NCBI RefSeq assembly: GCF_022045235.1
Contig: NW_027266308.1
Location: 15,624,001-15,688,000 of the forward strand
DNA length: 64,000 bases
Reading direction: 5' to 3'
From: Haliotis cracherodii
Taxonomy: Eukaryota
Shown here: positions 9,172-62,858 of the stretch, in pieces
Layout: the number at the start of each line of letters is the position of its first letter
Numbering within the stretch: position 1 is the stretch's first letter
Translations under genes and position numbers: made by a program
Notes under the pieces: generated by a model
What the model was told of the DNA's origin: nothing
The model's database searches: none
Seen by the model: only the letters and a program-made list of their open reading frames with translations

Positions 9172-10114
9172 TTAATAATTTGAAAATGAGCCACTTCTGC
9201 GTCTGAAAATCTTCTTGATAATGTTTGTGTTCTTTTTCCTGAACTTGAGAGCGGAGAAGACGACATGCTGAAAGACCTCCTTCAAACCCTTGTGGTCGCG
9301 AGCGGAGCACTCCACATAGCAGTCAGCACCAATGTCCTTGGCCAACTGGAAACCCTCGTCCGTGGAGACCTCGCTGTCTTCATTCCCGACTCGGAGGTCT
9401 ATCTTGGTGCCCACGAGGATGACCGGTCTCTTCTGTTTGGTGTGTTTGGAGTGTCTCTTCAGTTCAGGCATCCACACGTCATTGATGCTGGCCAACGTTT
9501 CCCGGTCACAGGTGGAGAAACAGAGGACCAGGACTTCACTTTCCTGATAGGAGAATGCTCTTAGACTCTCAAAACGTTTCTGGAAAGGGAAAGAAGGAAC
9601 CATAAGTACTTTGTAATGTAGAACAATGCAGAAAAAATGTAAATCTTAAAATTGTTCATAAACAATGCAGAAAATATAGACAATCAAAATGATTAATAGA
9701 AACTGTTAGAGATCTAACTATGGATATAGAAAGAGGAAAATATCAGTTCTATGAAAGGGTAGTTAATCACAAGCCTATTTTTGCATTAAGAAAAAGTATA
9801 ATTCAAACAGGAAATAGATGGAAATCTATAAAAATTAATAAACATTTTGTAAATCGGGTGTCTCATCCCGTTACGCTAAAATCTAACTTGCTACATACCT
9901 CGGCTGAGTTGTCGAACATGCTGATGACAAACTCCTCTCCAGCGACATTCAGAGGAACGACATAGTTGTCAAACACTGTGGCTTCATAATTATCCTTGAA
10001 GGACTTCTCAGCATAGCTCTCGGAGATGCTGGTCTTTCCGACCATCCCATCTCCCATGATGGCACAGTACAGGAATTTCTTATCGAGGTTCTTCATAGTA
10101 ATTCCTCCCTTCAT
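9172..10114 (-). CDS. Atypical Rho-family GTPase paralogue A (Cdc42/RhoJ/RhoQ-like), 207 aa, 2 exons
   Basis: Exon1 10114-9899 (72 codons; donor GAG|GTATGT), phase-0 intron 9898-9580 (319 nt; acceptor ttccctttccAG), exon2 9579-9172. G1 GDGMVGKTS, switch I YEATVFDNY, G3 DNSAE, G4 TKID, G5 CSAR; ends RRRSGSFSNY. AATAAA at 8827-8822. Confidence 0.93.
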
Positions 10115-10172
10115 CGTGAGTTGTTAGTTTGCAAAGCTCGGATCGATTGTACTGTCGCGAAGTGATGTCTTG

Positions 10173-10237
10173 TTATATACTCTGATTCTACCAATCAGAA
10201 GCTAGAACAAGATGACTCGTGGCTAGACGGCCACGTG
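10173..10237 (-). promoter_or_regulatory. Core promoter of gene A: E-box, inverted CCAAT, TATA
   Basis: On the sense strand: CACGTG (10237-10232), ATTGG (10195-10191), 11 nt, TATATAA (10179-10173), about 60 nt before the ATG. Confidence 0.7.
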
Positions 10238-13200
10238 ATGGATGGCACACACTGAGTGGCATGTCTTGAGTTGTGTGTACAGAAAAATATGCAGGACAGC
10301 CTTAGAAAATTAGTAGATTTGTCCAGATGTTGTTTTAAAGTTAGTCTAATTAAGGAATGATGGATAAACATTGTTGATTGGCTTAATCACGTTGTTTATT
10401 CAGTGATGGTTATGACCCTGAACGCTGCACATTAAAACACCTTCCTGTCTGCGGGCCGAGCTTGGATTGAGTAACTTCATGGGTTTTGCGTCCGGGTGTT
10501 AAACTGCGGGGCAAAAGACAGCATACCGAATATATTTTTTTTATAATTGAAAATTGAAAGAACTGTTAAATTTGATTATATCTATTTAACCGCCCTCCTT
10601 CTTGCAAAAGTTTGTAAAAATGTAATCTGCGGCTGGGTAATTTTGTATAAAAATAAATTGGTTCAATGAAGACTGGGTAAGAAATGAATTTGCAATCACA
10701 TGACCCCTTCCATGTTTGAAATGTTATAAGTTAGTGCAAATAGCAAATTGGTTGATTTTCATAGATAAAATGTATAAAATACACACCAGCAGTTGTATAT
10801 TATGCAAATTGTTTTTGTTTGTTTGTTTTTAAAAAAGTTTTAAATCAAATTATATTTTTAAAAATAGTACCATGCAAAAGTATGATTTGAGTGCTGCCTC
10901 AGCGCCGGTGCAGTTAAGTCTTTGGACATAATACTGCTGAAGTAAGATATTTTCCATTGAAAATCAACTGTATAATAAAATCAATTTAGAAGAATTGTTT
11001 CTTTTGCTCCTCACTTTAGTTTATTGCAAATACAACTTGGTAATATTCAATGAATGTGGACCTTGGCACAGACAGCAGGCGTTTAGTTTGTTGTCAATAC
11101 AATGAAACACATCTGTAACGTCACTTCAATGTTTAATCGATCCATTATTTTCCACAAAAGAACTACGTCGTTGTCAGTTATTAACGCCTACATTATGTTG
11201 AAACCATATTTCAATGAGGTAAACTTGGAATAGACGGAACTGTTTTTTTTATTTTGACACTCAAGTGACGGATTTCACAATTTGTCGGAAGACAAGTATC
11301 ACCCGTTGGGCTTTAACCCACATCATATATGATTTGTAGACGTGTAATAGTCAATCACGGCTACAGCGACACAATTGCGAACGGTTGTTAAAAAAATGAA
11401 ATGTATTAAAATAGCTATTATAATCCTGTAAAGCTTAGAAAATACATATTATATGTATAATGTTCTTACATTATTTTGCCTATAACGATACTCATTTTAA
11501 AGTAATTATATAAACCTTTGACGAGAAAAACTAAGAAACATACAAACAAATATATCCTTGTTAAGGGCTCTCGAAATTCTGTTTTCAAAACGTGCATTAA
11601 TAAATACCCGGTTATGACCCCACGAATTTGTAAAGAGCCTTGCACCAAGCATTGTAAAGATCAACTTTCGATGGAGCTTGGTGTACGTTCAAAAGCTGCT
11701 TCACGCACATACGATTCACGCAGTATGAGTACAAAACTATTTTCCACTAAAGAAGGTTTAGTAATAGTTAAAAATTAAGGATGTATTTCAAGTTTGAGAA
11801 TGTAGGAATCTGTTTCAATACTTGTGGTGTAAACCTGACTTGCCTTTGTATGTGTTTGTGATGGGTGCAACTTGTGAGGCAGGATACTCTCACTATTTTG
11901 AACACCTGGTGTCATACGTTATTGATAGTGATTCATAGACACATGCGTGTGATATAGTCGGAATTTTACAATGGACTCTGCTTGAAGAAGATATTTGTTA
12001 TGGTAATGAAAAAGAGTTTGTCGCTTATATCATCATATTGAAATGATATGCGTGAGTCCGAAAAACAATTCGACAGTTTCATTCTTGTCTATGAACTTGA
12101 CATCAAGCCGATACCATGTGAGGATTACAGAAATATCCCTTCCATTGTTACACATTCACCGCCAACACTCTGCCCAAAATCCGATATACTGATTGAAATT
12201 CAATATATTTGTTATTCGCCCTTCCATCCTAAATCAAATATGTTTTTCTTCTACTATTAAGCCAATAATAGCACTGTCCTTTAGCAGAGCTTTCTTATGA
12301 TCATGGAAAGAGTGTTATCGCTTTTAACTAATTCTAAACATATTATATTATACTCCGTAATTCAAGAAGACGGTGTTTCCGGACTAGCGACGTTCACTAT
12401 GTGTCTAGTGTATTTATATTGTATAAGGTGAGACTAAGATCTGCAACTTATCTGTCAGTAAATGTAATATAGTAACTAATGCATATAGTCAGTACAGAGT
12501 CGTTACAGTGGCCAACTGGCACATGACTACAGTACACGATGTATTTGAAATCCATTATGTGACGGGTGCCACCGGTAGGTCAGGATACGCTCACTTATTC
12601 GCAAACCCCTGTGTCATCACCATTGGATATTGATGCATAAGCACATGCTTCTAGTCCGAATCCCACAATTGACTCTGTTTTCAGTAGAGATCGCTGGTGA
12701 TTATGGCGATGTTTTTTTTTAATCGGAACAGCGTGAAACTAACTCTCCAGTTGATAATCTACAGCGAAACCTTGTTACTTCGAGAACTATCGAACATTCA
12801 TCGTGTTGCCGTAGTTCCTGACAAACATGTGACGATGTAAGACGATGTTTTCAATAAAGAATGATTTTGACGGGATCGTCTTAAACGATATATGGGTCAA
12901 AATTATTTGTAATAAACAAGGTTTCACTGTGCATTAAAATTCGTCATCACTAAAAAGTCATAAGATGACAAAAGTAAATTTGAAACTCATAATATTTATT
13001 AAAATTCAACAAGAACAAATGACAATAACAAAACATACAAAACAATGCACTTTTGTGATTAAAATCTGTTTGGGATGCATCTTTATATTATATTCGACAT
13101 GAATAAGTTATCACGAATATCACAGTTCCTTCTCAGGCTATCACAGCTGAAATATATCACAGATAAAATCGATAAAGGCACGAGCTCAGAAGTAAAACAC

Positions 13201-13361
13201 TTCTTATAGCACTGAGGATATCAGCTGCAAGCAGTATCACAGTTTGCACAGGCATCCACACAGAAAATGTCATTTGCCGCTCATGTGTTTTCCATTTGTC
13301 CCTTTGTCACTTTGCATTGAATGGAAACTGAATTCACCTATAATTGTTGACTCGCGAACAG

Positions 13362-14157
13362 TTAATAATTTGAAAATGAGCCACTTTTGCGTCTGAATAT
13401 CTTCTTGATAATGTTTGTGTTCTTTTTCCTGAACTTGAGAGCGGAGAAGACGACATGCTGAAAGACCTCCTTCAAACCCTTGTGGTCGCGAGCGGAGCAC
13501 TCCACATAGCAGTCAGCACCAATGTCCTTGGCCAACTGGAAACCCTCGTCCGTGGAGACCTCGCTGTCTGCAGTCCCGACTCGGAGGTCTATCTTGGTGC
13601 CCACGAGGATGACCGGTCTCTTCTGTTTGGTGTGTTTGGAGTGTCTCTTCAGTTCAGGCATCCACACGTCATTGATGCTGGCCAACGTTTCCCGGTCACA
13701 GGTGGAGAAACAGAGGACCAGGACTTCACTTTCCCGATAGGAGAATGCTCTTAGACTCTCAAAACGTTTCTGGAAAGGGAAAGAAGGAACCATAAGTACT
13801 TTGTAATGTAGAACAATGCAGAAAAAATGTAAGTCTTAATCAAAACAAGAAAATATCCAAATTAGTAGATATCGGTAACCATTGATTAAATGTGATGTCT
13901 CATCCCGTTACATGTACACTGATATGGATCTTGCTACATACCTCGGCTGAGTTGTCGAACATGCTGATAACAAACTCCTCTCCGGCAACTTGCAGTGGAA
14001 CGACATAGTTGTCAAACACTGTGGCTTCATAATTCTCCTTGAAGGACTTCTCAGCATAGCTCTCGGAGATGCTGGTCTTTCCGACCATCCCATCTCCCAT
14101 GATGGCACAGTACACGAATTTCTTATCGAGATTCTTCATAGTATTTCCTCCCTTCAT
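13362..14157 (-). CDS. Atypical Rho-family GTPase paralogue B, 207 aa, 2 exons
   Basis: Exon1 14157-13942, intron 13941-13770 (172 nt, GT..AG), exon2 13769-13362. G3 DNSAE, G4 TKID; ends RRKSGSFSNY. AATAAA at 13000-12995. Tandem paralogue of A with alignable UTRs and promoter. Confidence 0.93.
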
Positions 14158-14215
14158 CGTGAGTTGTTAGTTTGCAAAGCTCGGATCGATTGTACTGTCG
14201 CGAAGTGATGTCTTG

Positions 14216-14238
14216 TTATATACTCTGATTCTACCAAT
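14216..14238 (-). promoter_or_regulatory. Core promoter of gene B (ATTGG-N11-TATATAA)
   Basis: ATTGG 14238-14234 and TATATAA 14222-14216, identical to gene A. Confidence 0.7.
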
Positions 14239-14899
14239 CAGAAGCTAGAACCAGATGCTCCCGGGCTAGACGGCATATGTTGAGTGGCATGTCTTGAGTT
14301 GTTGATAGAGAGAGAAATGCGGGACAGCCTTAGAAAATTAGTGGATTGTCCCTCCTTCACGCTCAGTTAATCTTGTTGTTTTAAGGTCAGTCTTATTAGA
14401 GGAGTGGTAGATAAACATTAGTGATTGTCTAAATCACGTTGTGTACTCAGCGATACGTTTGTTGACGGGCCATTGTTAATTCCTAATATATCTGACCACT
14501 AACCTTCCTTCACATATGGACGCCCTTGTAAAACGGAACCATGAGACATTATGACATTATGTGATACAGACATATTTATTCAGCACCATCAAGAAGAAAA
14601 ATAAAAATAGAAAAAAGGTAACCCTCGTGTATCCGCACCCATACTCACATGCATACATCCGCACCCTTCGACTCATTCCCCACCATACCCCAATATCCGT
14701 CTCACTATATCCAAGCCAGCCCTCATGTATCCATACTTTTGCTCACATGCAAACACTCCCCTCCCACCACTCCCGCAATAGAAAGAGCGGCGGCTAGAGA
14801 TTTTACAAGCGCGCCGGAACGAATTAAGCTCAACTGGTCAACAGGTGATGATTGCATAAAATTACAATAAACTTCAGTCACAGATTTCCATATGGACCA

Positions 14900-15078
14900 T
14901 ACAATCCAGTGACTGACATCATGAGCATCAATCTATGCAATTGGGACACGACGACGTGCATCAACCAAGTCGAGTCTGACCACTTGATCCCGTTAGTCGC
15001 CTCTTACGACAAGCATAGTCACTTCTTACGACAACCATAGGTTGCTGAAGACCTCTTTTAACCCGGATCTTCACGGGT
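14900..15078 (-). mobile_element. SINE family S1 (3' end missing)
   Basis: Reverse complement of the S1 consensus (acaatccagtga..gatcccgttagtcgcctcttacgacaagcat..ggatcttcacgggt). Confidence 0.75.
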
Positions 15079-27601: not shown

Positions 27602-28325
27602 ATAGTGCATAAACGCATTTAAAAAATTGAAATTCACTTGTAGATTCTTACCAAATGAATGAATCATAAAGGCGATATATAGGTTTCATAGGGCAGCTGT
27701 TGATATAACTGAATTACTTTCAGCTGAACAGTTTTCTTTTTCTTTTTAAAAACATCGTACATTTATCCTAAAAATGACATAGAGGGCAGACATAAAGCCG
27801 AGGATGACATATGAGATACCGACAAATTCACTGAAGAGCCTTGCAAATAATATACATGAGATGTTTTAATTTATTTTCTTCCAGATGTGTCAGTCTCACA
27901 TAATCAAATCCCTAGGATTAAAAAGAAAATTCTGATCGTTATACAAAAAAAGTAACTGTGAACATATATCCAACTCTTGATCTAACTGCCTGTGAAATTG
28001 TCACTTAGAAGAAAGAGACAGACGAATACTTTCCTTTCTAATAAAGTACAGGATTTAAGTTGCAATTAGCTCAGCTTTTAGACTGAAATTCATTTCGTGC
28101 TTCTACCATCCATATCGTTTCAGACAATCAAAATAATCCAGCCAAGCTAATCCATTTATTTGATTAATCCAATCCGACGTATTTGCCTAAATACAAATAC
28201 TCTAATTAGACAACTACTGATCATTGTCTGTTGATTTACAAACGAGACAGCTCAAGACGGTCATCTCAGACTTTGACACCGGGGAGAGCGCATGATACTT
28301 GCCTAATTACAGGTTTAGTCTTCTG

Positions 28326-28347
28326 ATTGGCCGGTGATATCTTTATA
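28326..28347 (+). promoter_or_regulatory. Core promoter of gene C (ATTGG-N11-TTTATA)
   Basis: ATTGG 28326-28330, CCGGTGATATC, TTTATA 28342-28347. The same motif precedes D at 33275-33296. Confidence 0.65.
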
Positions 28348-28413
28348 TTCAGACGCCCACAATGTACCAACAGAAAACGATTTGCATGTTTGAAACGATA
28401 CATTTGCATAAAC

Positions 28414-29313
28414 ATGAAGGGATGGAACAAACATATGAAGAATCTTGATGAGAAGGTCGTGTACTGTGCCATCATGGGAGATGAGATGGTCGAAAAGACC
28501 AGCATCTCCGAGAGCTATGCTGAGAAGTCTTTCAAGGAGAATTATGAAGCCACAGTGTTTGACAACTATGTCGTTCCCCTGCACGTAGCCGGAAAGGAGT
28601 TTGTCATCAGCATGTTTGACACAGCAGGAAAGGTATGTTTATTTAGATGTTACATTCAGTAATACTACTTTGTGAATTTCGTGTTAACACTGAGAATAGA
28701 ACCAGTTGCAATATTGACGAAAATTGTTTATAAGATGTGTATGGATAAGCGTGGATTATGTTTAGCTTCAGAAAAGTATCGCATCAAACATTACATTCTG
28801 AATTTAATTGAAGTGTTTCTATCACTATTTAGGTGGCATATATGCGTTTTTGTTGGTTCTATTTACTATACATCGTGTACTGATCTATCCTTCTTACGTT
28901 TACAGAAACGTTTTGAGAGCCTAAGAATGTTCTCCTACAAGGAAAGTGAAGTCCTGCTTTTGTGTTTTTCTACCTTTGACCGGAAGACATTTCACACCGT
29001 CAATGACCTGTGGATGCCTGAACTAAAGAGACACTCCAAACAACACAAACAGAAGAGACCTGTCATCCTCGTGGGCACGAAGATAGACCTCCGAGTCGGA
29101 AATGAAAGAATTGGGGTCAGCACGGACGAGGGTGTCCAGTTGGCCAAGGACATCGGTGCTGACTGCTATGTGGAGTGCTCGGCTAACGACCACAAGGGCT
29201 TGAAGGAGGTCTTTCAGCATGTTGTCTTCTCTGCTCTCAAATTCAGAAATAAGAGAACCAACATTATCCAGAAGATGTTCAGACGCAGAAGTGCCTCTTT
29301 TGTAAATTACTAG
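28414..29313 (+). CDS. Atypical Rho-family GTPase paralogue C, 208 aa, 2 exons (damaged P-loop)
   Basis: Exon1 28414-28632 (AAG|GTATGT), intron 28633-28905 (273 nt), exon2 28906-29313. G1 GDEMVEKT, G3 DTAGK, G4 TKID, G5 CSAN; ends RRRSASFVNY. AATAAA 29595-29600. Confidence 0.88.
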
Positions 29314-32300
29314 ATTCAACAGGCTTTCATGTGATGATGGAAAATTACAAAGTGCAAGCATTATGAGATATCTGAATATTGTTGCAATATGAATGTCAAA
29401 TGAAAATTACATCAACAATGGAGGGAGGGAGATGTTCCACTTTACTTATACATGACATTCATACAAAGGCTTTTCATACATACATTTTATTGAATGACCG
29501 ATTAGTGCTATTTACAACCACGTCCTATGTCTGTTATAAGTGACAATCGTTCTTTCATATATGTTACTGTTTACTGTTATTCGTATTTGCCTTCAATAAA
29601 CTATGTATGTGATATATGATCATCAGAGTCTTGTCGATATGTCTCCTCAATACGATACGTGTTTTGAGCTAAGTCAGCTCTCAATAAACACGAGAAAACG
29701 TTTTCCATAATCATAACAAATATCCATTGTACAGCGTGTATCAAAAGTATGTGTTTATGAATCATTATCAAAAGTGATGATACGAAAAGGCAAGCGTATC
29801 ATGTCCCAACCGGAGATACTCGTCAAATACACAGTTGAAAGAGCATGCTCGAGTATACCTCGAAGGATGTGGAATGTAGACAACAAAGACTGCAGCTGCT
29901 GGAATATTGCTCGACATATGTGGAAATTTGACTCTTGCACAGTCATCCCTCTTGTCGTATGGTCTTGTGGGTTGTTTGTTTTTTCACTCTGAATCTTTAT
30001 GCATAAATCTCTATTTTAAGTTCAGGTGGGTAAATAAGAGGAGGGGATTTAGCTATTAGATCACGAATATGCCTAAAGCTTAAGTTAAACTTCTGGTCCT
30101 AATTCCCACGCAAATGAAACGCAGTTTCGTTTCTACGAGAATACGTTTAAAAGGACTAAACAGTTTTACACGAATGTCTCTTTCGACTGATTTACGTGTA
30201 TGAAAATATATGTCCACACATCATTGACTCTTTTATGTACACTAAAACAGACTGGGAAGATTTAAAAATAAAGCCAAAATAGTATGTTACCGATTTGGAT
30301 TCAATACAGATTTGTCACGGTCAGTTTTGTTAAGGATTTGGAGGCTGGTAGTGTTTATTCGAGGACCAAGTGAACAGTGACCTCGACTTTAATTCTCGCT
30401 ATGTATTTTGATTAGTTCCGTAAGACAAATACCTTAACTGCCCTTTATTGTGCTAAATGTTAGCCTTGAAACAAGAATTCGATTTCCTATACGTGCTGGG
30501 GCATGAGTTCATGTCTCAGCAATTCTGCTGCTTGAAGAAACGTTTCACGTTATATGTTTCTGTCTCTTAAATATAATCTGAAACTCGCGATATTGTGATA
30601 ATGTTTGGATTGAATGAATGAGTGGCTCTTTGAGTACATGTAAATCATCGAAGTTCGGGAAGCATGCACCTATGTATAAAACTTCACTGTCAATGGCTAC
30701 GACGTAGGTGTACAGTAATGAAGGTGCGTGTCAAGGTGAGTTATTTTAGCAATTACCTATAGACTGTCACGCACGTTGTGACATCTATTAGATCACTGGC
30801 CATCTACCACAAATTGCCAAAAGGATATACATGCAATCTATCCAAGGGAGTCGGCAACGAATATTAATACAGGCTCTGCACAATGTATGTTGTGATGTTT
30901 TGCTATTCAAACTATTTTGAATTAATATCTTCAAACAACATACGTTTCACCAACAGTAAAGCAAATGTGTTACACAACAAGAAGAGCAATACCTCTTTTC
31001 TGTTTGAAACAACACAAAGATGAATCCTACGGTCAGACAGCCCATTTATAAAAGTTTTATTGGCCAACTGTATAGTGACCTGAAACCCACTATGTCGCAC
31101 TCGCTGTTCCTGCCGAACAGCTTACAACCATACTAACTCAATCACAGAGCTATATTTACTGGTATTGTCTCACTTTGATAGACATTTCTCGTCTTCCATT
31201 TTTACCAACTTTTGAAAGTCCATCAACGACTTCAATGAACATGTCTCGTCTACCTAAACGGAAAGGAGATGGTAATAATAATGACAATATTCTGTTACAC
31301 CGCAGAAAACAACCAGTGCATTGCAACGACAACGAGGCTATTTGACGGGATGTGATTGGCTTCTGTCCATTGCCGCCTTATCCTTTCATTGTAAAACAAC
31401 AACGAATCCATTCACTTCTATTAATCCAATCAGACGTGTTTCCTTAGCCACTCTGAATCAGACAGCTACAAAATCAACAACGCTAATTCGAAGTGTTTAT
31501 TTGCATACATTTCCACTAATGAGCATGACACAACTAATATGTAAACATATACCAGGATTAAATTAGACATAGCTGCTTTAAAGATAAGTGTGCAAATGCA
31601 TGAAGAGACACAATATCAGCAACCATTTCCCTTAACCTACATATGTCTGGAAAGAAAGCCTCTAAAACTTCTAATCCGTGACTATGTAATGTTTTCGAAA
31701 ATACATAATTGCTGGGGTAAATAATATAACAAATAGATGGTGTGTAGAGGTAGAGTCAGACAATAATTTCAATAATTCGAACTCAAACAAACTTCATTTC
31801 ACTTGAGGTCATGTCATGGCAACCGAAGGTATAAGTATAAATTAATATAAGAAATCTTTGCAAACTCGATGGTAAAACACTGTGCATAAACGCATGTAGT
31901 ACATTATACATTTTTACTCATCATTCACGAGTACATTCTTACCAAATCCTACAGGAGATAAAATAATTAAGTTAGATTTACATCAGCAAGTGTTGATAAT
32001 ATTTACATACTTTCAACTTTACAACTTTCTTATTATTTAAAACATCCTACATATATACTAAAACTAATACACAGATCAAACATAATGCCAAATATGGTAC
32101 ATGCGATAGCGACAAATTCGCTGAAGCGCTGGCAAATAAGGTGCGGGAAATGCTTTTTACTTTCTTCCAGATTTTGTTCGTTCCAGACCAACACAATTAA
32201 TGCTTTACGTTTGAGTAGACAATATAATTGGATCTTTTTTAAATAAATAAGCGTGAGCATACATACGAAACCATCTTTAAATCTCTATGAAATTACTTTG

Positions 32301-33141
32301 TAGAAAAAGAAGCTTACCAACACGTTTCTTTCAAATAAATTACAGGAGTTGAGTTGCAATTAGCTTACTGTTACTTCTATTTTGACATTTTTAATTTTTG
32401 GTGTATTAATTTTTTATTCAAAGAAATCCATTTAGTTCAGCTTGGTATTTTAAATATTTAACTTTTGTTCGTTTTACAACATTTTTGGTATTTTTGTTTC
32501 TTTCCTGGTTAAAAAATCCGTGTCACAATGCTCAGGGTATCTTCCTGATTTTAAATTTACTTCCTGTCATTCAATACCGCATGTTCTCTCAAGACAGACA
32601 TGTTGAATGGGGTACAAAATTTTGTCATTTATTTATTTCAAAATTTAATATTTTATCATAAAATTTCAGCATTTATAAAATGTAAACAAAGTATGTTTGT
32701 TTGTTTAAATGTACAAGGTATAATATTTTGGTGTAAATTTAAGTCTAATTTAAAGGTGCATTCTCACTATTACATTGATAATTTAAAGGTAAATTTATTG
32801 TTTGTTAATTTGATTTATTTTTTATTGTTTTGTTTGTTTGTTTACATTTTTACTTATGAGTATTATTGTTTATTTATTTTAGCTTGTACCGGCTTAACTG
32901 TGTACAGAAATAAATTCTTTATCCCCCACACGTACTTCTAAGATTATAACTGATTTCGTGTCTCCACAATCCATATCGTTTCAGACAATCTAAATTACTA
33001 GTATTTCTACAAAGCTGATCAATTCATTTGATTAATCCAGTCTGACGTATTTGACTAACCACTCAGAATTAGACGACTAAAAACACAAGAAAAAATATTG
33101 GCAGTAGTGCCAGGTATGAGTAGTCATGCGTTTAGCACCAA

Positions 33142-36100
33142 ACAAATACTCTAATTAGACAGCTACTGATCATTGTCTGTTGATTTACAAACGAGACAGC
33201 TCAAGACGGTCATCTCAGACTTTGACACCGGGGAGAGCGCATGATACTTGCCTAATTACAGGTTTAGTCTTCTGATTGGCCGGTGATATCTTTATATTCA
33301 GACGCCCACAAAGTACCAACAGAAAACGCGTTGCACGTTTGAAACGATACATTTGCATAAACATGAAGGGATGGAACAAACATATGAAGAACCTTGATGA
33401 GAAGGTCGTGTACTGTGCCATCATGGGAGATGAGATGGTCGGAAAGACCAGCATCTCCGAGAGCTATGCTAAGAAATCTTTCAAGGAGAATTATGAAGCC
33501 ACAGTGTTCGACAACTATGTCGTTCCCCTGCACGTAGCCGGAAAGGAGTTTGTCATCAGCATGTTTGACACAGCAGGAAAGGTATGTTTATTTAGATGTT
33601 ACATTCAGTAATACTACTTTGTGAATTTCGTGTTAACACTGAGAATAGAACCAGTTGCAATATTGACGAAAATTGTTTATAAGATGTGTATGGATAAGCG
33701 TGGATTATGTTTAGCTTCAGAAAAGTATCGCATCAAACATTACATTCTGAATTTAATTGAAGTGTTTCTATCACTATTTAGGTGGCATATATGCGTTTTT
33801 GTTGGTTCTATTTACTATACATCGTGTACTGATCTATCCTTGTTACGTTTACAGAAACATTTTGAGAGCCTAAGAATGTTCTCCTACAAGGAAAGTGAAG
33901 TCCTGCTTTTGTGTTTTTCTACCTGTGACCGGAAGACATTTCACACCGTCAATGACCTATGGATGCCTGAACTAAAGAGACACTCCAAACAACACAAACA
34001 GAAGAGACCTGTCATCCTCGTGGGCACGAAGATAGACCTCCGAGTCGGAAATGAAAGAATTGGGGTCAGCACGGACGAGGGTGTCCAGTTGGCCAAGGAC
34101 ATCGGTGCTGACTGCTATGTGGAGTGCTCGGCTAACGACCACAAGGGCTTGAAGGAGGTCTTTCAGCATGTTGTCTTCTCTGCTCTCAAATTCAGAAATA
34201 AGAGAACCAACATTATCCAGAAGATGTTCAGACGCAGAAGTGCCTCTTTTGTAAATTACTAGATTCAACAGGCTTTCATGTGATGATGGAAAATTACAAA
34301 GTGCAAGCATTATGAGATATCTGAATATATTGTTGCAATATGAATGTCAAATGAAAATTACATCAACAATGAAGGGAGGGAGATGTTCCACTTTACTTAT
34401 ACATGACATTTATACAAAGGCTTTTCATACATACATTTTATTGAATGACCGATTAGTGCTATTTACAACCACGTCCTATGTCTGTTATTAGTGACAATCG
34501 TTCTTTCATATATGTTACTGTTTACTGTTATTCGTAATTGCCTTCAATAAACTATGTATGTGATATATGATCATCAGAGTCTTGTCGATATGTCTCCTCA
34601 ATACGATACGTGTTTTGAGCTAAGTCAGCTCTCAATAAACACGAGAAAACGTTTTCCATAATCATAACAAATATCTGCTAAAAGCAGAGTCCATTGTACA
34701 GCGTGTATCAAAAGTATGTGTTTATGAATCATTATCAAAAGTGATGATACGAAAAGACAAGCGTATCATGCCCCAACCGGAGATACTCGTCAAATACACA
34801 GTTGAAAGAGCGTGCTCGAGTATACCTCGAAGGATGTGGAATGTAGACAACAAAGACTGCAGCTGCTGGAATATTGCTCGACATATGTGGAAATTTGACT
34901 CTTGCACAGTCATCCCTCTTGTCGTATGGTCTTGTGGGTTGTTTGTTTTTTCACTCTGAATCTTTATGCATAAATCTCTATTTTAAGTTCAGGTGGGTAA
35001 ATAAGAGGAGGGGATTTAGCTATTAGATCACGAATATGCCTAAAGCTTAAGTTAAACTTCTGGTCCTAATTCCCACGCAAATGAAACGCAGTTTCGTTTC
35101 TACGAGAATACGTTTAAAAGGACTAAACAGTTTTACACGAATGTCTCTTTCGACTGATTTACGAGTATGAAAATATATGTCCACACATCATTGACTCTTT
35201 TATGTACACTAAAACAGACTGGGAAGATTTAAAAATAAAGCCAAAATAGTATGTTACCGATTTGGATTCAACACAGATTTGTCACGGTCAGTTTTGTTAA
35301 GGATTTGGAGGCTGGTAGTGTTTATTCGAGGACCAAGTGAACAGTGACCTCGACTTTAATTCTCGCTATGTATTTTGATTAGTTCCGTAAGACAAATACC
35401 TTAACTGCCCTTTATTGTGCTAAATGTTAGCCTTGAAACAAGAATTCGATTTCCTATACGTGCTGGGGCATGAGTTCATGTCTCAGCAATTCTGCTGCTT
35501 GAAGAAACGTTTCACGTTATATGTTTCTGTCTCTTAAATATAATCTGAAACTCGCGATGTTGTGATAATGTTTGGATTGAATGAATGAGTGGCTCTTTGA
35601 GTACATGTAAATCATCGAAGTTCGGGAAGCATGCACCTATGTATAAAACTTCACTGTCAATGGCTACGACGTAGGTGTACAGTAATGAAGGTGCGTGTCA
35701 AGGTGAGTTATTTTAGCAATTACCTATAGACTGTCACGCACGTTGTGACATCTATTAGATCACTGGCCGTCTACCACAAATTGCCAACAGGATATACATG
35801 CAATCTATCCAAGGGAGTCGGCAACGAATATTAATACAGGCTCTGCACAATATATGTTGTGATGTTTTGCTATTCAAACTATTTTGAATTAATATCTTCA
35901 AACAACATACGTTTCACCAACAGTAAAGCAAATGTGTTACACAACAAGAAGAGCAATACCTCTTTTCTGTTTGAAACAACACAAAGATGAATCCTACGGT
36001 CAGACAGCCCATTTATAAAAGTTTTATTGGCCAACTGTATAGTGACCTGAAACCCACTATGTCGCACTCGCTGTTCCTGCCGAACAGCTTACAACCATAC

Positions 36101-36756
36101 TAACTCAATCACAGAGCTATATTTACTGGTATTGTCTCACTTTGATAGACATTTCTCGTCTTCCATTTTTACCAACTTTTGAAAGTCCACCAACGACTTC
36201 AATGAACATGTCTCGTCTACCTAAACGGAAAGGAGATGGTAATAATAATGACAATATTCTGTTACACCGCAGAAAACAACCAGTGCATTGCAACGACAAC
36301 GAGGCTATTTGACGGGATGTGATTGGCTTCTGTCCATTGCCGCCTTATCCTTTCATTGTAAAACAACAACAAATCCATTCACTTCTATTAATCCAACCAG
36401 ACGTGTTTCCTTAGCCACTCTGAATCAGACAGCTACAAAATCAACAACGCTAATTCGAAGTGTTTATTTGCATACATTTCCACTAATGAGCATGATACAA
36501 CTAATATGTAAACATATACCAGGATTAAATTAGACATAGCTGCTTTAAAGATAAGTGTGCAAATACATGAAGAGACACAATATCAGCAACCATTTCCCTT
36601 AACCTACATATGTCTGGAAAGAAAGCCTCTAAAACTTCTAATCCGTGACTATGTAATGTTTTCGAAAATACATAATTGCTGGGGTAAATAATATAACAAA
36701 TAGATGGTGTGTAGAGGTAGAGTCAGACAATAATTTCAATAATTCGAACTCAAACA
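33142..36756 (+). repeat. Segmental duplication, copy 2 (contains gene D)
   Basis: Nearly identical to 28193-31789; ends abruptly at a LINE junction at 36757. Confidence 0.95.
33363..34262 (+). CDS. Atypical Rho-family GTPase paralogue D, 208 aa, 2 exons
   Basis: Exon1 33363-33581, intron 33582-33854, exon2 33855-34262. G1 GDEMVGKT, G3 DTAGK. AATAAA 34546-34551. Confidence 0.91.
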
Positions 36757-37384: not shown

Positions 37385-38848
37385 CACACTCTGCGCCAAA
37401 ATGGCAAATCTTCAGAGAGCTGAGTTTGTTACTTCACAGAGAGGCGGTCAACAAGTGCTTCATGCTGGATACCGATACAGACTGAATGTCAAGCATCAAC
37501 TTGCAGTTCACTTCAAGTGTGTAATTCCTGGCTGCAATGGAAGATGTAGCACTATCTGCGACCACATCGCATCCACTCTGCACACTCATCCTCCTGTTGA
37601 GAATGCAGATCACATCAGAATGATAGCCAGAATGAAGGAACATGTCAAGACTGACATCAAGTCGGTTCTGCCAGTTCCTGAATCCAGAGCCAACGTCAAC
37701 CTGGAAGATCCATGGACCAAGACAGAAGATGGCAGAGACGTCCTGTGCGTAGATGTGCGTAGATGACAGACTACTGGCGTTTGCAACCACTGAGATGTTG
37801 GAAATACTGAGTGAAGCTGACATCATGTTTATGGATGGTACTTTCTTTGGTTGCCCTAGCTTGTGGTTGCAGGTGGTCATTATTCATTGTCTGGTGGATG
37901 GCAAAATGTATCCTGTGGCATTTTCACTGCTCCCAAACAAGACCAAGCAGACTTATGTTAGATTATTTAGATTGTTGAGGGACATTGTTGGTGTAAGGTC
38001 TGGTGTAGAACTCTCCCCAGATGTGACCCAGATAGACTTTGAATCGGCTGTCATCAGTGCTGGCAGTGAGATCGTCCCTGACAGCTCAGTTGGGGGCTGT
38101 TTTTCCCACTATGCCCAAGCTTCGTGGCGTCAAGTTGCTGACAGAGATCTTTGGCGAGAGTAGATGAACAATCCTGCAGTACAGAGCCACGACCGACGAG
38201 CTGCAGCTTTGCCACAACTGTAACTGGATCAAGTCCAAGATGCTTGGATTGAAGTTATAGAGCAGGGCCCAGATGGTCAACAGATTTCCACCTTCAATGA
38301 CTTTGTAACAAGTACCTGGGTAGAAGACGACGCTAGATTTCCCTTTAATATCTGGAACCATCACGAGAACACTCGCTCCAACAAACACCTGGAGGGGTTT
38401 CACACTGGACTAAAGAAGAGAATGCCCCGGTCACATCCCAACATCTACCAGTTCATAAAAGAAATCAAGAAGTTTGAGACAGCAGATAAACGTTCTAGAT
38501 GACAGACAGGTCTTGGTGGTGCTGTTAAACGCCGTGCACGTATTGACAAAAACAGAGATGCCCGACTTGAGAGACTGAAGCTACACCTCGCAACTGGGCG
38601 AAAAACTGTGATGCAGTTTCTAGATGCAGTTGGACACTTGGTGAAATTACAGTAATTGTTATGTGACTGATGAATTAGTGTATCACACATGTACTTGATT
38701 AACTTATGTGACTGATGATGATGGTGATGATGATGATGATGTATGTTGAATATATGACCTGATTAAAGTATACATCATCATAAACCCTATATTTGTTTTG
38801 ATAAGGGCGTAGGCGAAATGGGGTGTAGGCGATATGAGGTCAGGCCAC
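37385..38848 (+). mobile_element. Mutator-like (MULE) transposon with a decayed FLYWCH-MULE transposase (37401-38655)
   Basis: FLYWCH-type N-terminus (TSQRGGQQVLHAGYRY..FKC..C..HTHPP), then FMDGTF, YPVAFSLLPNKTKQTY, IDFESA, GCFSHYAQA, SNKHLEGFH. A 10-bp duplication (gtgcgtagat, 37745-37764) shifts the frame, and there are stops. Repeated gtaggcga subterminal motif at 38805-38835. Confidence 0.88.
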
Positions 38849-38849
38849 A

Positions 38850-40049
38850 CAAAATACATAATGGCAGTATTGATAGTTATGAATAGTCAAGCGTTTATCC
38901 CCAAACAAATATTTTAATTAGACAGCTACTGACCATTATCTGTTGATTACAAACGAGACAGCTCAAGACGGTCATCTCAGACTTTGACACCGGTGAGAGC
39001 ACGTGAAACGTACCTAATTACAGATTTACCCTTCTGATTAGCTCACAATATCTTTATATTCAGACGCCCACAATGTCCCAACAGAAAGACCTGTTAAGAT
39101 CCCGTTAGGGAATAGGTGTTCAGTAACCCATGCTTGCCTATGGCGACTATGCTTGTCGTAAGAGGCGACTAACGGGATCGGGTGGTCAGGCACGCTGACT
39201 TGGTACATGTCATCGTATCCCACTTGCGTGGATCGATGCTCATGATATCCATCAGTGGACTGTCTGGTCCGGACTCGATTATTTACAGAACGTCGTCATA
39301 TTGCTGGAATATTGTGCGGCGTTAAACAACAAACATCGCATACGATGCCTAATTGACTCTTCCATCCTCATCTAATACTTTGAGCATAACATTACTTTGG
39401 AAGTGGGATCGACTTGCATTCATTCGCAAAAACTTAATTCAGTTATTCAGTACTTAACTGCCCTTATTTGCGTATTTATGACCATACAATGACGCCTTGT
39501 TTCCCCGAGAATAGCTTTAATTGCTGCAAATCTTCCCACACCAAGAAAACATTTGAAATAGCACGCTTGTATATATTTGTGTCTTGATATTAATATTTTA
39601 TATTTCAGAATCATACATCAATATTGGATCGATTTCACCGTCAAATATGTTACAAGCAGTCGAGAAATCTATAAATCTGGTTATTAATGAACAAATGAAA
39701 AACTGGCCCCATTGCCTGGCGTACTTGCATGGCAAGAGGTTTATGTATATAATTATCGTACTGATCGATCCTTTTTACAAGGAAACAAACAATCCAAAGA
39801 GAAGAAACCGGTCATCCCCGTTGGCACCAAGATAAACCTCCGAGATGGGAATCAAGGAAGCGAGGTCATCATGAACGCGGGTTACTAACTGGCTAAGGAT
39901 ATTGGTGCTGACTGCTATGTTGAGTGCTCGGTTCGCGACCACACGGGTTTAGAGAAGAGTTTTAGGCATGTCGTCTTCTCCACTCTGAGAGAACCAACAT
40001 TATCAAGAAGATGTTCAGACGCAGAAGTGCCTCTTTTGCAAATATTTAG
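38850..40049 (+). pseudogene. Pseudogene of the Rho-like family (C/D type)
   Basis: Promoter 38850-39087 is homologous to D. A SINE sits at the presumptive 5' UTR and exon 1 is absent. Exon-2 remnant about 39775-40049 reads KKPVIPVGTKINLRDGNQGSEVIMNAGY*LAKDIGADCYVECSVRDHTGLEKSFRHVVFSTL / RTNIIKKMFRRRSASFANI*, with TAA at 39886-39888 and deletions. Confidence 0.9.
39088..39333 (+). mobile_element. SINE family S1 inserted just downstream of the pseudogene TATA
   Basis: S1 consensus begins right after ..gtcccaacagaaa. Confidence 0.8.
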
Positions 40050-40779
40050 ATTCAACAGTCTGTTATGTGGACAAGGAAGAGGATACACTGCAAGCGTCAT
40101 GAAATATCTGATTATTGTAGCTATGTGAATGTCAAATTAAAATCACATCAACATGGAAGATATATGTTCGAAGAGGTTTAAACCCGATTGCACAGTTACG
40201 TTGACTTGCATCATGGCTGTCACCAAGTTGAGCAAAGAACTTTCAGACGAACCATCACTGTACAAATTCGTGCAAAAGGAAGAAGATGTAACACTTAATT
40301 GATACATGACATTTATAGCAAGGCTTTTAACATGTACAAGTCCGCCCTGGTTAAAATTGGTCCGCCCTGGTTACACCGTCACTCTAGTTCTAATGCAATA
40401 TGTTTCTCAGAACGGATTTCCTCAGTGCAAAAATCCTTGGTTTTAATGCCACCCATATTATAATGCCAATGCCAATGGGCTTTTTTAGAACAAACGTTCC
40501 ATTTCACTGATTATAATGCGAATTTGTTTTAAATTTTGAGATAACATTGGCAATGTATTTCTCCTTTCTAAATAATAAAAAAAATAATGGCATTGACTTC
40601 AGTTGTTTTCAAGTTTATCCTCACACACATTGAATTATTGATTAGTGCTGTTTATATAAACAGACAAAAACCCTTTCCGTATTCATAAGAAATCTCAGCG
40701 TGTCGATTGTACTATTGCCCTCCAATAACGTTGCGCTGTTATTAATGACAATATGAATTTCATATGATACTGCTTATAC

Positions 40780-40980: not shown

Positions 40981-41147
40981 NNNNNNNNNNNNNNNNNNNN
41001 NNNNNNNNNNNNNNNNNNNNNNNNNNNNNNNNNNNNNNNNNNNNNNNNNNNNNNNNNNNNNNNNNNNNNNNNNNNNNNNNNNNNNNNNNNNNNNNNNNNN
41101 NNNNNNNNNNNNNNNNNNNNNNNNNNNNNNNNNNNNNNNNNNNNNNN
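40981..41147. other. Assembly gap (167 N)
   Basis: Run of n. Confidence 1.
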
Positions 41148-57185: not shown

Positions 57186-57207
57186 ATTGGATGAAATAAT
57201 CTATATA
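57186..57207 (+). promoter_or_regulatory. Core promoter of gene E (ATTGG-N11-TATATA)
   Basis: TTCTGATTGG ATGAAATAATC TATATA, about 57 nt before the ATG. Confidence 0.7.
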
Positions 57208-57263: not shown

Positions 57264-58136
57264 ATGAAAAACGTCAATATGAAGAACGATGAAGAAAAAT
57301 ACATATCCTGTGCCATCATGGGAGACGGGATGGTCGGAAAGACCAGCATCTCCGAGAGCTATGCCCAGAAATCCTTCAAGGAGAACTATGAAGCCACAGT
57401 GTTTGATAACTATGTCGTTCCACTGAATGTAGCTGAGGAGGAGTTTGTCATCAGCATGTTCGATACTGCAGGAAAGGTGAGCTGACAATAATGCCAGAAA
57501 TATGTTCACTTTTTGTTTAAAAGAGACCAGTCTAGTTTTTTGCTGTACTAATGTATGTATTATGGATCATTGACTACCTATGAGTAGCTCACTGTTGCAA
57601 TTACATGAGCTTGACAATGGCATTGTGCCACATGTATTATAGATATAATATACATTCTACTTAATTTATTACAGAACGTTTAAGCGCATACATGTATGTT
57701 CATGGATCTTGAAAAACAATAAATGTTTACCTTTTTTGTTTCATATTTCCAGAAAAACTTTGAGAATCTCCGTTCCTTCACATACCGTGAGAGTGAAGTC
57801 CTGCTTCTGTGTTTCTCCACCTGTGACCGGGAAACGTTGGCCAGCATCAATGACGTGTGGATGCCTGAACTGAAGAGACACTCCAAACACACCAAACAGA
57901 AGAGACCGGTCATCCTCGTGGGCACCCAAATTGATCTCCGTTTCGGGAATGAAGACAGCGAGGTCTCCACGGACGAGGGTGTCCAGTTGGCCAAGGACAT
58001 TGGTGCTGACTGCTATGTGGAGTGCTCTGCTCGCGACCACAAGGGTTTGAAGGAGGTCTTTCAGCATGTCGTCTTCTCCGCTCTCAAGTTCAGGAAAAAG
58101 AACACAAACATTATCAAGAAGATCTTCAGACGTTGA
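57264..58136 (+). CDS. Atypical Rho-family GTPase paralogue E, 198 aa, 2 exons
   Basis: Exon1 57264-57476 (AAG|GTGAGC), intron 57477-57752 (276 nt), exon2 57753-58136. G3 DTAGK, G4 TQID; ends KKIFRR*. AATAAA 58660-58665. Confidence 0.93.
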
Positions 58137-60082: not shown

Positions 60083-60630
60083 ATCATTCTGACGGTTAGA
60101 ACATGATGTATAAGTCAATGTCCAAAGTCACACTGACGATCTTATTATGATGTAGAGGTCAATGTCTAACATCACTCTGACGATCTTAATATGATGTAGA
60201 GGTCAATGTCTAACATCACTTTGGCGATCTTAATATGATGTAGAGGTCAATGTCTAACATCACTCTGACGATCTTAATATGATGTAGAGGTCAATGTCTA
60301 ACATCACTCTGACGATCTTGATATGATGTAGACCCGTGAAGATCCGGAGTAGAATACGTCTTCAGCAACCCTTGCTTGCCGTAAAAGGCGGCTATGCTTG
60401 TCGTGAGAGGCGACTGACGGGATCGGGTGGTCAGTCTTACTGGCATGGTTGATGCATGTTATCATTTCCCAATTGCGTGGATGGATGCTCATGATGTCAA
60501 TCACTGGATTGTTTGGTCCAGACTCGATTATTTACAAACCGCCGTCATATAGCTGGATTATTGAAGAGTGCGGCGTTAAACAACACACAAACAAACCAAT
60601 AATATGATGTAGAAGTCAATGTCCAACATG
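60083..60630. repeat. 44-bp minisatellite interrupted by an S1 SINE
   Basis: Unit CACTCTGACGATCTTAATATGATGTAGAGGTCAATGTCTAACAT, about 6 copies. Confidence 0.9.
60331..60600 (+). mobile_element. SINE family S1 with TSD
   Basis: Begins gacccgtgaagatccgg; flanked by ATATGATGTA at 60321-60330 and 60602-60611. Confidence 0.88.
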
Positions 60631-60810: not shown

Positions 60811-60910
60811 CATCACTAGTCTGCCTGTCACGCCCAATGGAATCTGTTTCGGCTGAATATCATCACTAGTCTGCCTGTCACGCCCAATGGAATCTGTTTC
60901 GGCTGAATAT
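60811..60910. repeat. Perfect 50-bp tandem duplication
   Basis: catcactagt..ggctgaatat occurs twice. Confidence 0.95.
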
Positions 60911-61491: not shown

Positions 61492-61642
61492 GTGGAATAG
61501 TCTTGTGTTTAAAGCATTCACTCGTCACGCCGAAGACCGGGTTCAGTTCCCTACATGTGTACAATCTGTGAAGCCAATTTCTGGTGTCCCCCGCAGTGAT
61601 ATTGCTCGAATATTGCTAAACGTGACATAAAACATTCACACA
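61492..61642 (+). mobile_element. SINE family S2 (degenerate)
   Basis: cgtcacgccgaagacc..tttctggtgtcccccgc; TSD CTTTGAACG at 61483-61491 and 61643-61651. Confidence 0.75.
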
Positions 61643-61905
61643 CTTTGAACGTCTTGAAGCAAGCTAGGATTGTATAAGTGGTTTGTACGTCGCCTGTCTT
61701 CAACGGGCAGATTAGTAGCCACGTCGCCTAACTCTAATAACAGAAGCTCCAAACAATCAGACAATGTAAACATTGTCATAACTCCCCAGACAAGTAAATA
61801 CTAATAACACCTTGTAAGATTTCCTTAAGACCATGATGATTTACATTGCGCGTGTTTCCAATACAGCAACCTTGTCCATCTGGCAGTCCCCTGGCATCGT
61901 TAAAC

Positions 61906-61964
61906 CACGTGACAACCGTGGCGTGAGTGTTCTTGCTCGTAATTGGTCAGTTCTGTCTATATAA
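61906..61964 (+). promoter_or_regulatory. Core promoter of gene F: E-box, inverted CCAAT, TATA
   Basis: CACGTG 61906-61911, ATTGG 61942-61946, 11 nt, TATATAA 61958-61964. Confidence 0.7.
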
Positions 61965-62013
61965 GCAAGTATGCTTGGCAAGAATTGGCACACGTTGACT
62001 GAACTACATTACT

Positions 62014-62858
62014 ATGAAGGGTCGCAATATGAAGGCTGATTCGCAGAAATACATATCCTGTGCCATCATGGGAGACGGGATGGTCGGAAAGACCAGCATC
62101 TCCGAAAGCTATGCCCAGAAATCCTTCAAGGAGAACTATGAAGCCACAGTGTTTGATAACTATGTCGTTCCACTGAATGTAGCTGAGGAGGAGTTTGTTA
62201 TCAGCATGTTTGACACAGCAGGAGAGGTGAGCAAAATATTTGAACGATGATCTATCGATTGGTATCTGATGTATTTTATGTATGACAATTCTTTCTTTGA
62301 AGAAACAAGATTGTGTTCGCTATTGATTCAAACTCGTTATGGAAAATGTATACTTGCTGCAGTGCTAGGCTACGACAGCATGGCTAAGATATTCTCAAAT
62401 GAAAAATAACAAAAATATTGTCAGTCGTAATGCTACAAGAGTCATACATTTACCTTTCCTTTTCTTATTTCCAGAAAAACTTTGAGAATCTCCGTTCCTT
62501 CACATACCGTGAGAGTGAAGTCCTGCTTCTGTGTTTCTCCACCTGTGACCGGGAAACGTTGGCCAGCATCAATGACGTGTGGATGCCTGAACTGAAGAGA
62601 CACTCCAAACACACCAAACAGAAGAGACCGGTCATCCTCGTGGGCACCCAAATTGATCTCCGTTTCGGGAATGAAGACAGCGAGGTCTCCACGGACGAGG
62701 GTGTCCAGTTGGCCAAGGACATTGGTGCTGACTGCTATGTGGAGTGCTCTGCTCGCGACCACAAGGGTTTGAAGGAGGTCTTTCAGCATGTCGTCTTCTC
62801 CGCTCTCAAGTTCAGGAAAAAGAACACAAACATTATCAAGCAGATCTTCAGATTGTAA
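62014..62858 (+). CDS. Atypical Rho-family GTPase paralogue F, 198 aa, 2 exons
   Basis: Exon1 62014-62226 (GAG|GTGAGC), intron 62227-62474 (248 nt), exon2 62475-62858. G3 DTAGE, G4 TQID; ends KQIFRL*. AATAAA 63456-63461. Confidence 0.93.

Follow-up and report, generated by a model that had tools for sequence, protein, structure and literature searches.

Rho surveys list a fixed set of animal subfamilies. In Rnd and RhoH, replacement of G12 and Q61 abolishes both intrinsic hydrolysis and the hydrolysis stimulated by GTPase-activating proteins (GAPs), and these proteins are controlled by expression and turnover. Here, we analyzed a 64,000-nt stretch of the Haliotis cracherodii genome (the window; GCF_022045235.1, NW_027266308.1:15,624,001-15,688,000, which equals G000:C45:15,624,001-15,688,000 in our contig labels) that carries six Rho-like genes, designated A to F. 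The best sequence matches of their family among solved structures are in the TC10/RhoQ, RhoJ, and Cdc42 group, with which they have in common the G-domain fold, the TVFDNY switch I, the TQID G4 motif, and the W-x-PE and Y-V-ECSA motifs. With Rnd1 to Rnd3, RhoH, and RhoBTB they have in common that the residues equivalent to Ras G12 and Q61 are substituted in a nucleotide pocket that is otherwise kept. We consider it probable that the abalone genes represent a Haliotis-specific, tandemly amplified sub-branch (types 1 to 3) of an unnamed gastropod and bivalve Rho subfamily and that this sub-branch is damaged in its switch yet selectively kept.

The family differs from each of these described groups. 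In contrast to Cdc42 and TC10, the molluscan proteins form a separate clade, have no CAAX box, and carry a Rho insert that is 9 residues shorter. They also have A34 instead of P34, M13 instead of A13, and a switch II of the form xDYExLRA, and the intron that follows codon 61 is lacking in the abalone Cdc42 and TC10-like genes (contig C15). The window copies are additionally without G12 and/or Q61. Unlike Rnd, RhoH, and RhoBTB, the abalone proteins originated independently inside the mollusc clade, and none of the former appeared in the top 60 solved relatives. Prenylation and the insert, both found in Rnd and RhoH, are missing from the abalone proteins; G60, which Rnd and RhoH keep, is lost in the type 1 proteins and in gene G, a neighbor outside the window. 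By analogy with Rnd and RhoH, the abalone proteins would be expected to be under the control of expression and turnover rather than of guanine nucleotide exchange factors (GEFs) and GAPs. Two other likenesses are analogies only: (i) Rit/Rin, which belong to the Ras branch, resemble the family in their CAAX-less, strongly basic C terminus, and (ii) EhRho1 of Entamoeba, which lacks the insert helix, took ranks 6, 25, and 27 in the Foldseek search with the model of E. However, EhRho1 is amoebozoan and lipid anchored, whereas the abalone proteins have no anchor motif.

A Rho-like clade of gastropods and bivalves

Close relatives turned up in molluscs alone, both in exon-wise and in whole-protein searches, for which single exons and the database proteins P0011 and P0003 were used. 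The matches came from the gastropods Haliotis, Gigantopelta, Batillaria, Littorina, Nucella, Babylonia, Pomacea, Biomphalaria, Bradybaena, Elysia, Aplysia, Patella, and Lottia and from the bivalves Solemya, Sinanodonta, Potamilus, Tegillarca, Mytilus, Magallana, Mactra, and Mya, as well as from scallops. A doubtful chiton sequence (P0068) was placed inside the clade by two trees and outside by a third. Among 1.84 billion cluster representatives, an exhaustive HMMER search yielded 86 matches at an E value of ≤1e-30, and all 17 family-like cluster representatives with a known organism were from molluscs. The automatic names of the relatives are inconsistent (Cdc42, RhoQ, RhoJ-like, RhoL, Rac1, racD-like, and ARAC7), as expected of a clade that has no name. 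The genes of the window are likewise already annotated, under the misleading RefSeq names "cell division control protein 42 homolog" or "RhoJ-like," while the family itself is unnamed in the literature found: a search covering lophotrochozoan-specific Rho families and abalone Cdc42/Rho retrieved no paper naming it. A systematic survey of mollusc Rho proteins counts nine subfamilies, from which the present family is absent, and the two oyster Cdc42 genes in that survey encode identical canonical proteins of 191 residues (PMC4669188).

The phylogeny was constructed with IQ-TREE from 91 rows under LG+C20+F+G4 (bootstrap correlation, 0.984; not fully settled), with the canonical abalone Rho genes represented by partial exon translations and with Rnd and RhoH sequences left out. 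All 57 gastropod and bivalve rows formed a single clade (100/97), and so did Cdc42 (92/84) and TC10/RhoJ (100/99). The supports around the sister group of the family were only 22 to 43, placing it in a poorly resolved Cdc42/TC10/RhoU region. The original prediction had regarded the genes as RhoJ/Q-like. This assignment was not upheld, as the spliced proteins nested within neither Cdc42 nor TC10/RhoJ and the position of the intron also differs. A phase-0 intron after codon 61 is found in the family and in abalone Rac and RhoU but not in abalone Cdc42 or TC10-like genes; in the Cdc42 gene (C15, 9.857 to 9.866 Mb), the exon breaks are located near residues 37 to 39, 96 to 97, and 162 to 166, with none after residue 61. 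The genes thus belong to a Rho-like clade of its own that is related to the Cdc42/TC10/RhoU region. The broader proposal of atypical, nonprenylated, Q61-less Rho genes of an undescribed subfamily agrees with this clade, with the cysteine-less tails, and with the K or E found at residue 61. The family had also been thought to be lineage specific, which is correct for the loss of G12 and Q61, seen in Haliotis only, but not for the subfamily, which is mollusc-wide and in which the absence of CAAX and the short insert are ancestral.

The family consensus comprises GDGMVGK[TS], Y-x-A-TVF(D/E)NY, FD[TS]AGQxDYExLRA, and TQxDL, and the Rho-type switch I TVF(D/E)NY is present in all six window copies. 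The spacing from G4 to G5 is 27 to 28 residues, compared to 37 in canonical Rho proteins and 24 in Rab-like proteins, so that only ~4 residues of the Rho insert are left. The insert helix (~13 residues) is missing, and a gap of 9 residues appears in the alignment with Cdc42 and TC10. The tail, ALK[YF]RKKKxxIxxxFxR, is polybasic-hydrophobic and has no cysteine, and no CAAX box was detected in the window genes, the RefSeq models, or the family members outside the caenogastropods. The window copies show this set of traits, though their P-loop and tail motifs have drifted slightly, and most other members of the clade retain G12 and Q61. An additional, CAAX-bearing exon was considered and rejected, as the RefSeq models stop at identical codons and the tails of the noncaenogastropod relatives are devoid of cysteine. 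In the caenogastropod members P0021, P0037, P0039, P0042, and P0074 (Littorina, Babylonia, and Nucella), a C-terminal extension of 30 to 40 residues ends in ...LSC, ...VSC, or ...VSCC; judged from these endings, it is possibly a regained lipidation site in an otherwise cysteine-less family.

Both exons match Pfam Ras (PF00071), and a Rho-family G domain was recognized with Pfam, AlphaFold2 (AF2), and Foldseek, single copies being damaged in G1 (C and D) or G3 (A and B). For E, the AF2 model (predicted local distance difference test [pLDDT] score, 87.7) has the G fold with α5 reaching the C-terminal end and is without the insert helix, the corresponding block having a pLDDT score of 63. Its top Foldseek matches were all Rho proteins, namely, Rac, EhRho1, RhoA, Cdc42, and TC10 (template modeling scores, 0.75 to 0.80). 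For H, an intact relative downstream of the window, the nearest solved relatives were TC10 (145.7 bits), Cdc42 (~138 bits), and Rac1 (~124 bits).

Derived switch states in the abalone sub-branch

Genes A to G form a clade (100/99) that is the sister group of H. Types 1 (A and B), 2 (C and D), and 3 (E and F) each have H. asinina orthologues and are therefore older than the Haliotis crown. Alignment columns that were ≥75% conserved in the rest of the family and changed in the sub-branch were G12, Q61, D63, S89, F90, Q116, and K183 (Cdc42 numbering); switch II and the two catalytic positions are therefore part of the shift in these seven positions. The derived states, DNSAE and DTAGK among them, are the same in H. 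asinina, H. rubra, H. rufescens, and H. cracherodii: (i) all six type 1 proteins contain FDNSAEKRFESLRA; (ii) type 2 proteins have FDTAGKK[RH]FES and an E or S at position 12; and (iii) type 3 proteins have K61, with E61 confined to F-lineage proteins from H. cracherodii and H. rufescens. At position 12, an E is found in C and D and a D or S in orthologues.

Several motif states described for the six copies in the original prediction were observed again here. Switch I is invariably YEATVFDNY, Q61 is absent throughout (residue 61 is E in A, B, and F and K in C, D, and E), and no copy has a tail cysteine, the proteins ending in ...IFRR, ...IFRL, ...SGSFSNY, or ...SASFVNY immediately before the stop codon. 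G1, G2, G4, and G5 had been described as present in all copies; while G4 (TKID or TQID) and ECSA occur in every copy, G1 is damaged in C and D. In addition, A and B read FDNSAE and thus have lost the glycine of DxxG (G60) besides Q61. A charge-reversed switch II had been described for these copies; much of the divergence (xDYExLRA) is family-wide and not peculiar to them, and the replacement of D63 belongs to the sub-branch. K16, T17, T35, D57, [TN]KxD, and ECSA are kept across the copies, the P-loop of C excepted, and the G15E substitution of C was found in no other of the 34 Haliotis proteins. Replacement of G12/Q61 with the rest of the pocket kept, as in GTPase-deficient atypical Rho proteins, was accordingly found in the sub-branch. 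The idea that mis-splicing conceals a Q61 was rejected: the Q preceding KRFESLR is the acceptor CAG read in frame, there is no usable upstream AG, and the RefSeq models concur.

The copies are under purifying selection, with pairwise Nei-Gojobori ratios of nonsynonymous to synonymous substitutions (dN/dS) of 0.12 to 0.38 among the paralogues A to H. Protein identity between H. cracherodii and H. asinina is 96% to 97% for H and I (the latter being another relative downstream), compared to 91% to 93% for types 1 and 3 and only 80% in the case of type 2. The derived types are faster evolving but constrained.

Exons 1 and 2 have different histories. Genes E and F differ at 9.4% of the nucleotides in exon 1 and at 1.0% (4/381) in exon 2 (p = 1.5e-6), their introns and flanks being unalignable; E and G differ at 39.8% in exon 1 and at 3.1% in exon 2 (p = 5e-30); and A and B differ at 4.6% (10/216) and 1.2% (5/405), respectively. 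Even between A and E, only 11 differences were counted in the ~336 nt past the first 45 nt of exon 2. Exon 2 is thus far less diverged than exon 1, indicating that gene conversion homogenizes it among types 1 and 3 and G; C and D are outside this pattern. The P-loop and switches I and II are encoded by exon 1 together with the initial 15 codons of exon 2, and this part remains type specific, and the copies therefore differ mainly on the nucleotide-sensing, partner-binding face. The original prediction of birth and death is consequently to be modified. Tandem duplication with turnover is evident from the 98.6% identity of C and D, the presence of one dead copy, and the varying copy number among Haliotis species, but the pattern is not one of pure birth and death, as exon 2 evolves in concert.

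Gene models, the wider cluster, and transcription

The six two-exon genes were confirmed at the predicted positions by the open reading frame (ORF) table, a six-way DNA alignment, and scripted mapping, and so was their divergent layout, with A and B on the minus strand and C to F on the plus strand (Table 1). The introns are 172 to 319 nt long and have canonical splice sites: the donor, AAG or GAG followed by GTATGT or GTGAGC, is in phase 0 directly after residue 61, and the acceptor, YYYCAG, is followed by AAA. When the exons were joined in scripts for the identity check and the codon counts, all six spliced products were letter-for-letter identical to H. cracherodii RefSeq models. The pattern ATTGG-N11-TATATA has five matches in the window versus 0.79 expected, and four of the five are located directly upstream of A, B, E, and F; the regions upstream of C and D have ATTGG...TATATT instead.

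Table 1. Features of the Rho-like cluster, given as window positions (position 1 is the first nucleotide of the window) or as distances from the window
Feature	Position	Strand	Remarks
Gene A exon 1 (type 1)	9899..10114	-	Met to ...FDNSAE; P-loop GDGMVGKT; YEATVFDNY; G3 degenerate; product P0129
Gene A exon 2 and stop codon	9172..9579	-	KRFESLR...TKID...ECSA...RRRSGSFSNY, no Cys; Pfam Ras 9.2e-19; acceptor CAG/AAA
Gene B exon 1 (type 1)	13942..14157	-	DNSAE; product P0130
Gene B exon 2 and stop codon	13362..13769	-	Intron 172 nt
Gene C exon 1 (type 2)	28414..28632	+	P-loop GDEMVEKT (G12E, G15E); DTAGK; product P0137
Gene C exon 2 and stop codon	28906..29313	+	KRFESLRM...; tail RRRSASFVNY
Gene D exon 1 (type 2)	33363..33581	+	P-loop GDEMVGKT (G12E); DTAGK; product P0009
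Gene D exon 2 and stop codon	33855..34262	+	KHFESLRM...
Gene E exon 1 (type 3)	57264..57476	+	P-loop GDGMVGKT; DTAGK; product P0003
Gene E exon 2 and stop codon	57753..58136	+	KNFENLR...TQID...tail KKIFRR
Gene F exon 1 (type 3)	62014..62226	+	P-loop GDGMVGKT; DTAGE; product P0136
Gene F exon 2 and stop codon	62475..62858	+	Introns and flanks unalignable to those of E
ATTGG-N11-TATATA before A	10174..10195	-	Putative CCAAT/TATA core promoter
ATTGG-N11-TATATA before B	14217..14238	-	Putative CCAAT/TATA core promoter
ATTGG-N11-TATATA before E	57186..57207	+	Putative CCAAT/TATA core promoter
ATTGG-N11-TATATA before F	61942..61963	+	Putative CCAAT/TATA core promoter
Gene G	11 kb before window		Protein P0002; DTAAQ; P-loop GDSHIGKS
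Gene H (locus L006)	64 kb after window		Protein P0011; canonical GDGMVGKT and DTAGQ
Gene I (locus L009/L058)	152 kb after window		Protein P0147
Recent tandem duplication giving C and D	28193..36756	+	28193-31789 versus 33142-36756, 98.6% identity over 3.6 kb
Dead type 2 copy	38847..40157	+	Promoter remnant, SINE-like repeat, and 3' part of exon 2
Assembly gap	40981..41147	.	167 N, sole N run in the window; intergenic repeat DNA
SINE-like repeat copies	1102-1369, 7328-7546, 14893-15078, 39087-39335, 49213-49375, 54696-54963, 60331-60599		

A whole-genome search with exon 2 of E identified three further intact relatives, G, H, and I, on the same chromosome. The cluster thus totals nine genes over 230 kb and extends past both ends of the window. 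Genes H and I share the phase-0 intron that follows codon 61 but are interrupted once more inside exon 1, by an intron between ...FENYA and VPL..., which is missing from A to G; therefore, one intron was lost ahead of the abalone expansion. Rho genes had been said to form tandem arrays rarely, which does not apply to this genome. Other abalone Rho loci include about ten RhoA-like genes on C56, three Rac genes on C8, and the Cdc42 and TC10-like genes on C15, and further Rho trios are located on C45 at 59.5 to 60.0 Mb and 68.94 to 68.99 Mb. The RhoA-like array (C56:21.10 to 21.28 Mb; L012, L013, L018 to L021, L024, L026, L027, and L031 to L038), which represents a second large Rho expansion, has in-frame stops in L020/L042 and L036. 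The trio at 68.94 to 68.99 Mb (L017/L035, L028/L049, and L029/L048), ~53 Mb off, has CAAX boxes and, in two genes, a divergent switch II, and it is placed outside the mollusc clade in the trees.

A pseudogene and an orphan promoter had been predicted as separate items. Both remnants are real, but they are collinear with one C/D unit and are therefore the two halves of a single dead copy. The promoter remnant (38847 to 39087) matches the sequence preceding D at 86% identity, and positions 39786 to 40157 correspond to the 3' two-thirds of exon 2 and the 3' flank, with 77% identity and one TAA. The distance between the two blocks is 699 nt, compared to 661 nt in D. Exon 1, the intron, and the 5' part of exon 2 have been replaced by ~700 nt that include a short interspersed nuclear element (SINE)-like repeat. 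This dispersed repeat (~200 to 270 nt; copies 72% to 89% identical) is scattered across the cluster, and one copy occupies the place expected for exon 1 of the dead gene. The assembly gap is separated from the dead copy before it by 0.8 kb and from E after it by 16 kb, and a repeat copy ends exactly at 40980. No family ORF or exon touches it, and therefore no gene model relies on continuity through it.

Other elements were also observed in the window. A decayed Tc1/mariner-type transposase occupies several frames at 2009 to 3133 on the minus strand (DDE_3, 1.4e-7; HTH_Tnp_Tc3_2, 9.7e-9). Between B and C, a 419-amino-acid ORF (20351 to 21610, plus strand) has a reverse transcriptase domain (RVT_1, 3.4e-28) and represents a retroelement. 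A minisatellite at 22715 to 22978 (plus strand) is a tandem repeat coding for (V/R)TPWP(T/A)RVT-like units in two frames. Between the D duplication unit and the dead copy, positions 37401 to 38163 (plus strand) encode a FLYWCH zinc finger (3.2e-6) and, after it, a MULE transposase domain (5.6e-9).

Among the public sequencing runs searched, none was on record as RNA. One run (X1), whose RNA status is a guess, contained over positions 9100 to 14300 exon pieces of A and B only. A 204-nt contig covers exon 2 of A (9214 to 9417), and a 151-nt contig joins position 13942 directly to 13769, i.e., at the predicted junction of B with the 172-nt intron gone, lending weak support to the splicing of B. 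Runs X2 to X4 were rejected as expression evidence: they cover intergenic DNA at 95% to 99% identity and are therefore DNA runs from a related individual or species. Oyster members of the family are encoded in many short Logan contigs, which may be transcripts.

Proposed function and alternative explanations

The older members of the family, including H, have a complete set of catalytic residues and are probably normal cycling switches. The abalone sub-branch has K or E in place of Q61 and, in some types, E, D, or S in place of G12; D63 has been replaced, and type 1 and G have lost the DxxG glycine, the new states then being retained throughout the age of the genus. We propose that guanine nucleotide is still bound, because K16, T17, T35, D57, [TN]KxD, and ECSA are intact; C would be the exception, owing to its G15E. 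GTP would be hydrolyzed slowly or not at all, and GAPs would be without effect. Types 2 and 3 could then act as permanently loaded binders, and type 1 and G could act as switch-dead binders of effectors or regulators. The Ras G60A mutant binds nucleotide, does not undergo the GTP-driven switch, and traps exchange factors. The A60 of A, B, and G presumably resembles this mutant and points to a switch-dead rather than an "on" protein. The dose of the proteins would be set by transcription and turnover. With a net charge of +6 to +9 over 17 to 18 residues, the basic tail might hold the proteins near acidic membranes in place of a lipid, and phosphorylation at the RRxS site, present in type 1 and type 2 tails, might switch this attachment. 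We infer from the sequences the nucleotide state, the loss of hydrolysis, what the tail does, and the kind of partners, and the same applies to the "constitutively GTP-bound, expression-controlled" signaling or decoy proteins of the original prediction.

Several observations weigh against a switch-damaged but selectively kept sub-branch. The RefSeq XP_ models are predictions, and the support from X1 is thin, with a depth of 2 to 4 and a junction contig that extends for 21 nt on one side, under the 31-nt threshold. The dN/dS values of the paralogues are blurred by gene conversion. The G15E substitution should damage phosphate binding in C, a copy that might be turning into a pseudogene. Motifs alone are the basis for inferring nucleotide binding and hydrolysis, and the Ras Q61E mutant has been reported to hydrolyze GTP faster than the wild type; E61 does not necessarily prevent hydrolysis, and residue 61 may thus leave A, B, and F able to hydrolyze GTP. 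An amphipathic membrane helix in the tail was not supported, since the hydrophobic moment was not above that of shuffled tails (a fraction of 0.07 to 0.6 of which reach it), leaving the charge to stand alone.

Some of these observations would also fit redundant duplicates that are drifting to pseudogenes, the loss of G12, G60, and Q61 then reflecting decay and not new function. The array includes one dead copy, G15E is unique to C, the derived types evolve 2 to 6 times faster than the founders H and I, and dN/dS values of 0.2 to 0.38 are high for a Rho gene. We nevertheless consider decay decidedly unlikely, as the reading frames and splice sites are intact in all six genes, DNSAE and DTAGK have become fixed in four species of Haliotis, among them the distant H. 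asinina, dN/dS is well under 1 wherever the changes suffice, and the remaining nucleotide-binding residues are all kept. The damage to the switch argues in turn against ordinary cycling proteins that signal like Cdc42/TC10 and in which a coevolved GAP or an altered catalytic geometry compensates for E/K61 and for switch II. Both catalytic positions, 12 and 61, have been hit, as in the GTPase-deficient Rnd and RhoH, and they are among just seven family-conserved positions altered in the sub-branch; moreover, K61 and A60 (DNSAE and DTAAQ) match Ras mutants defective in hydrolysis or switching. Cycling is thus unlikely, even though switch I is nearly of the Cdc42/Rac type with T35 kept, E61 can support hydrolysis in Ras, and the ancestral family members look fully competent.

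The proteins could also serve in immunity, as decoys or guards for Rho-modifying toxins of pathogens, with the switch face diversified by conflict and the body homogenized. A tandem, fast-evolving family with gene conversion, divergence focused on the P-loop and switch face, and retention of the toxin-target residues Y32, T35, and N39 would be consistent with such a role. A "cdc42 homolog" is reported to be up-regulated in abalone haemocytes after Vibrio challenge, although it is not attributable to A to F (PMC11250055). However, no signal of positive selection was found, dN/dS being <0.4 in exon 1 too, and the ancestral family is widespread and conserved, fitting housekeeping signaling; we therefore regard this role as very improbable. 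Within the preferred reading of a damaged but retained sub-branch, it is also rather unlikely, if worth stating, that the battery of locked or switch-dead paralogues, instead of switching, serves as dominant modulators (for example, by trapping GEFs or effectors or as decoys for Rho-targeting toxins of pathogens). If this were true, the partner-binding face (exon 1 and switch II) would diversify while gene conversion keeps the body uniform.

A mollusc-wide clade without the insert and without CAAX, both of which are hallmarks for recognizing or localizing Rho proteins, would add a branch to the Rho tree. The abalone cluster would provide within one locus a natural series from the competent H through the G12/Q61-less types 2 and 3 to the G60-less type 1 and G, which could be used for studying the origin and roles of pseudo-GTPases. 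Since abalones are farmed and endangered, a link to haemocyte or stress signaling, if true, would be of practical interest.

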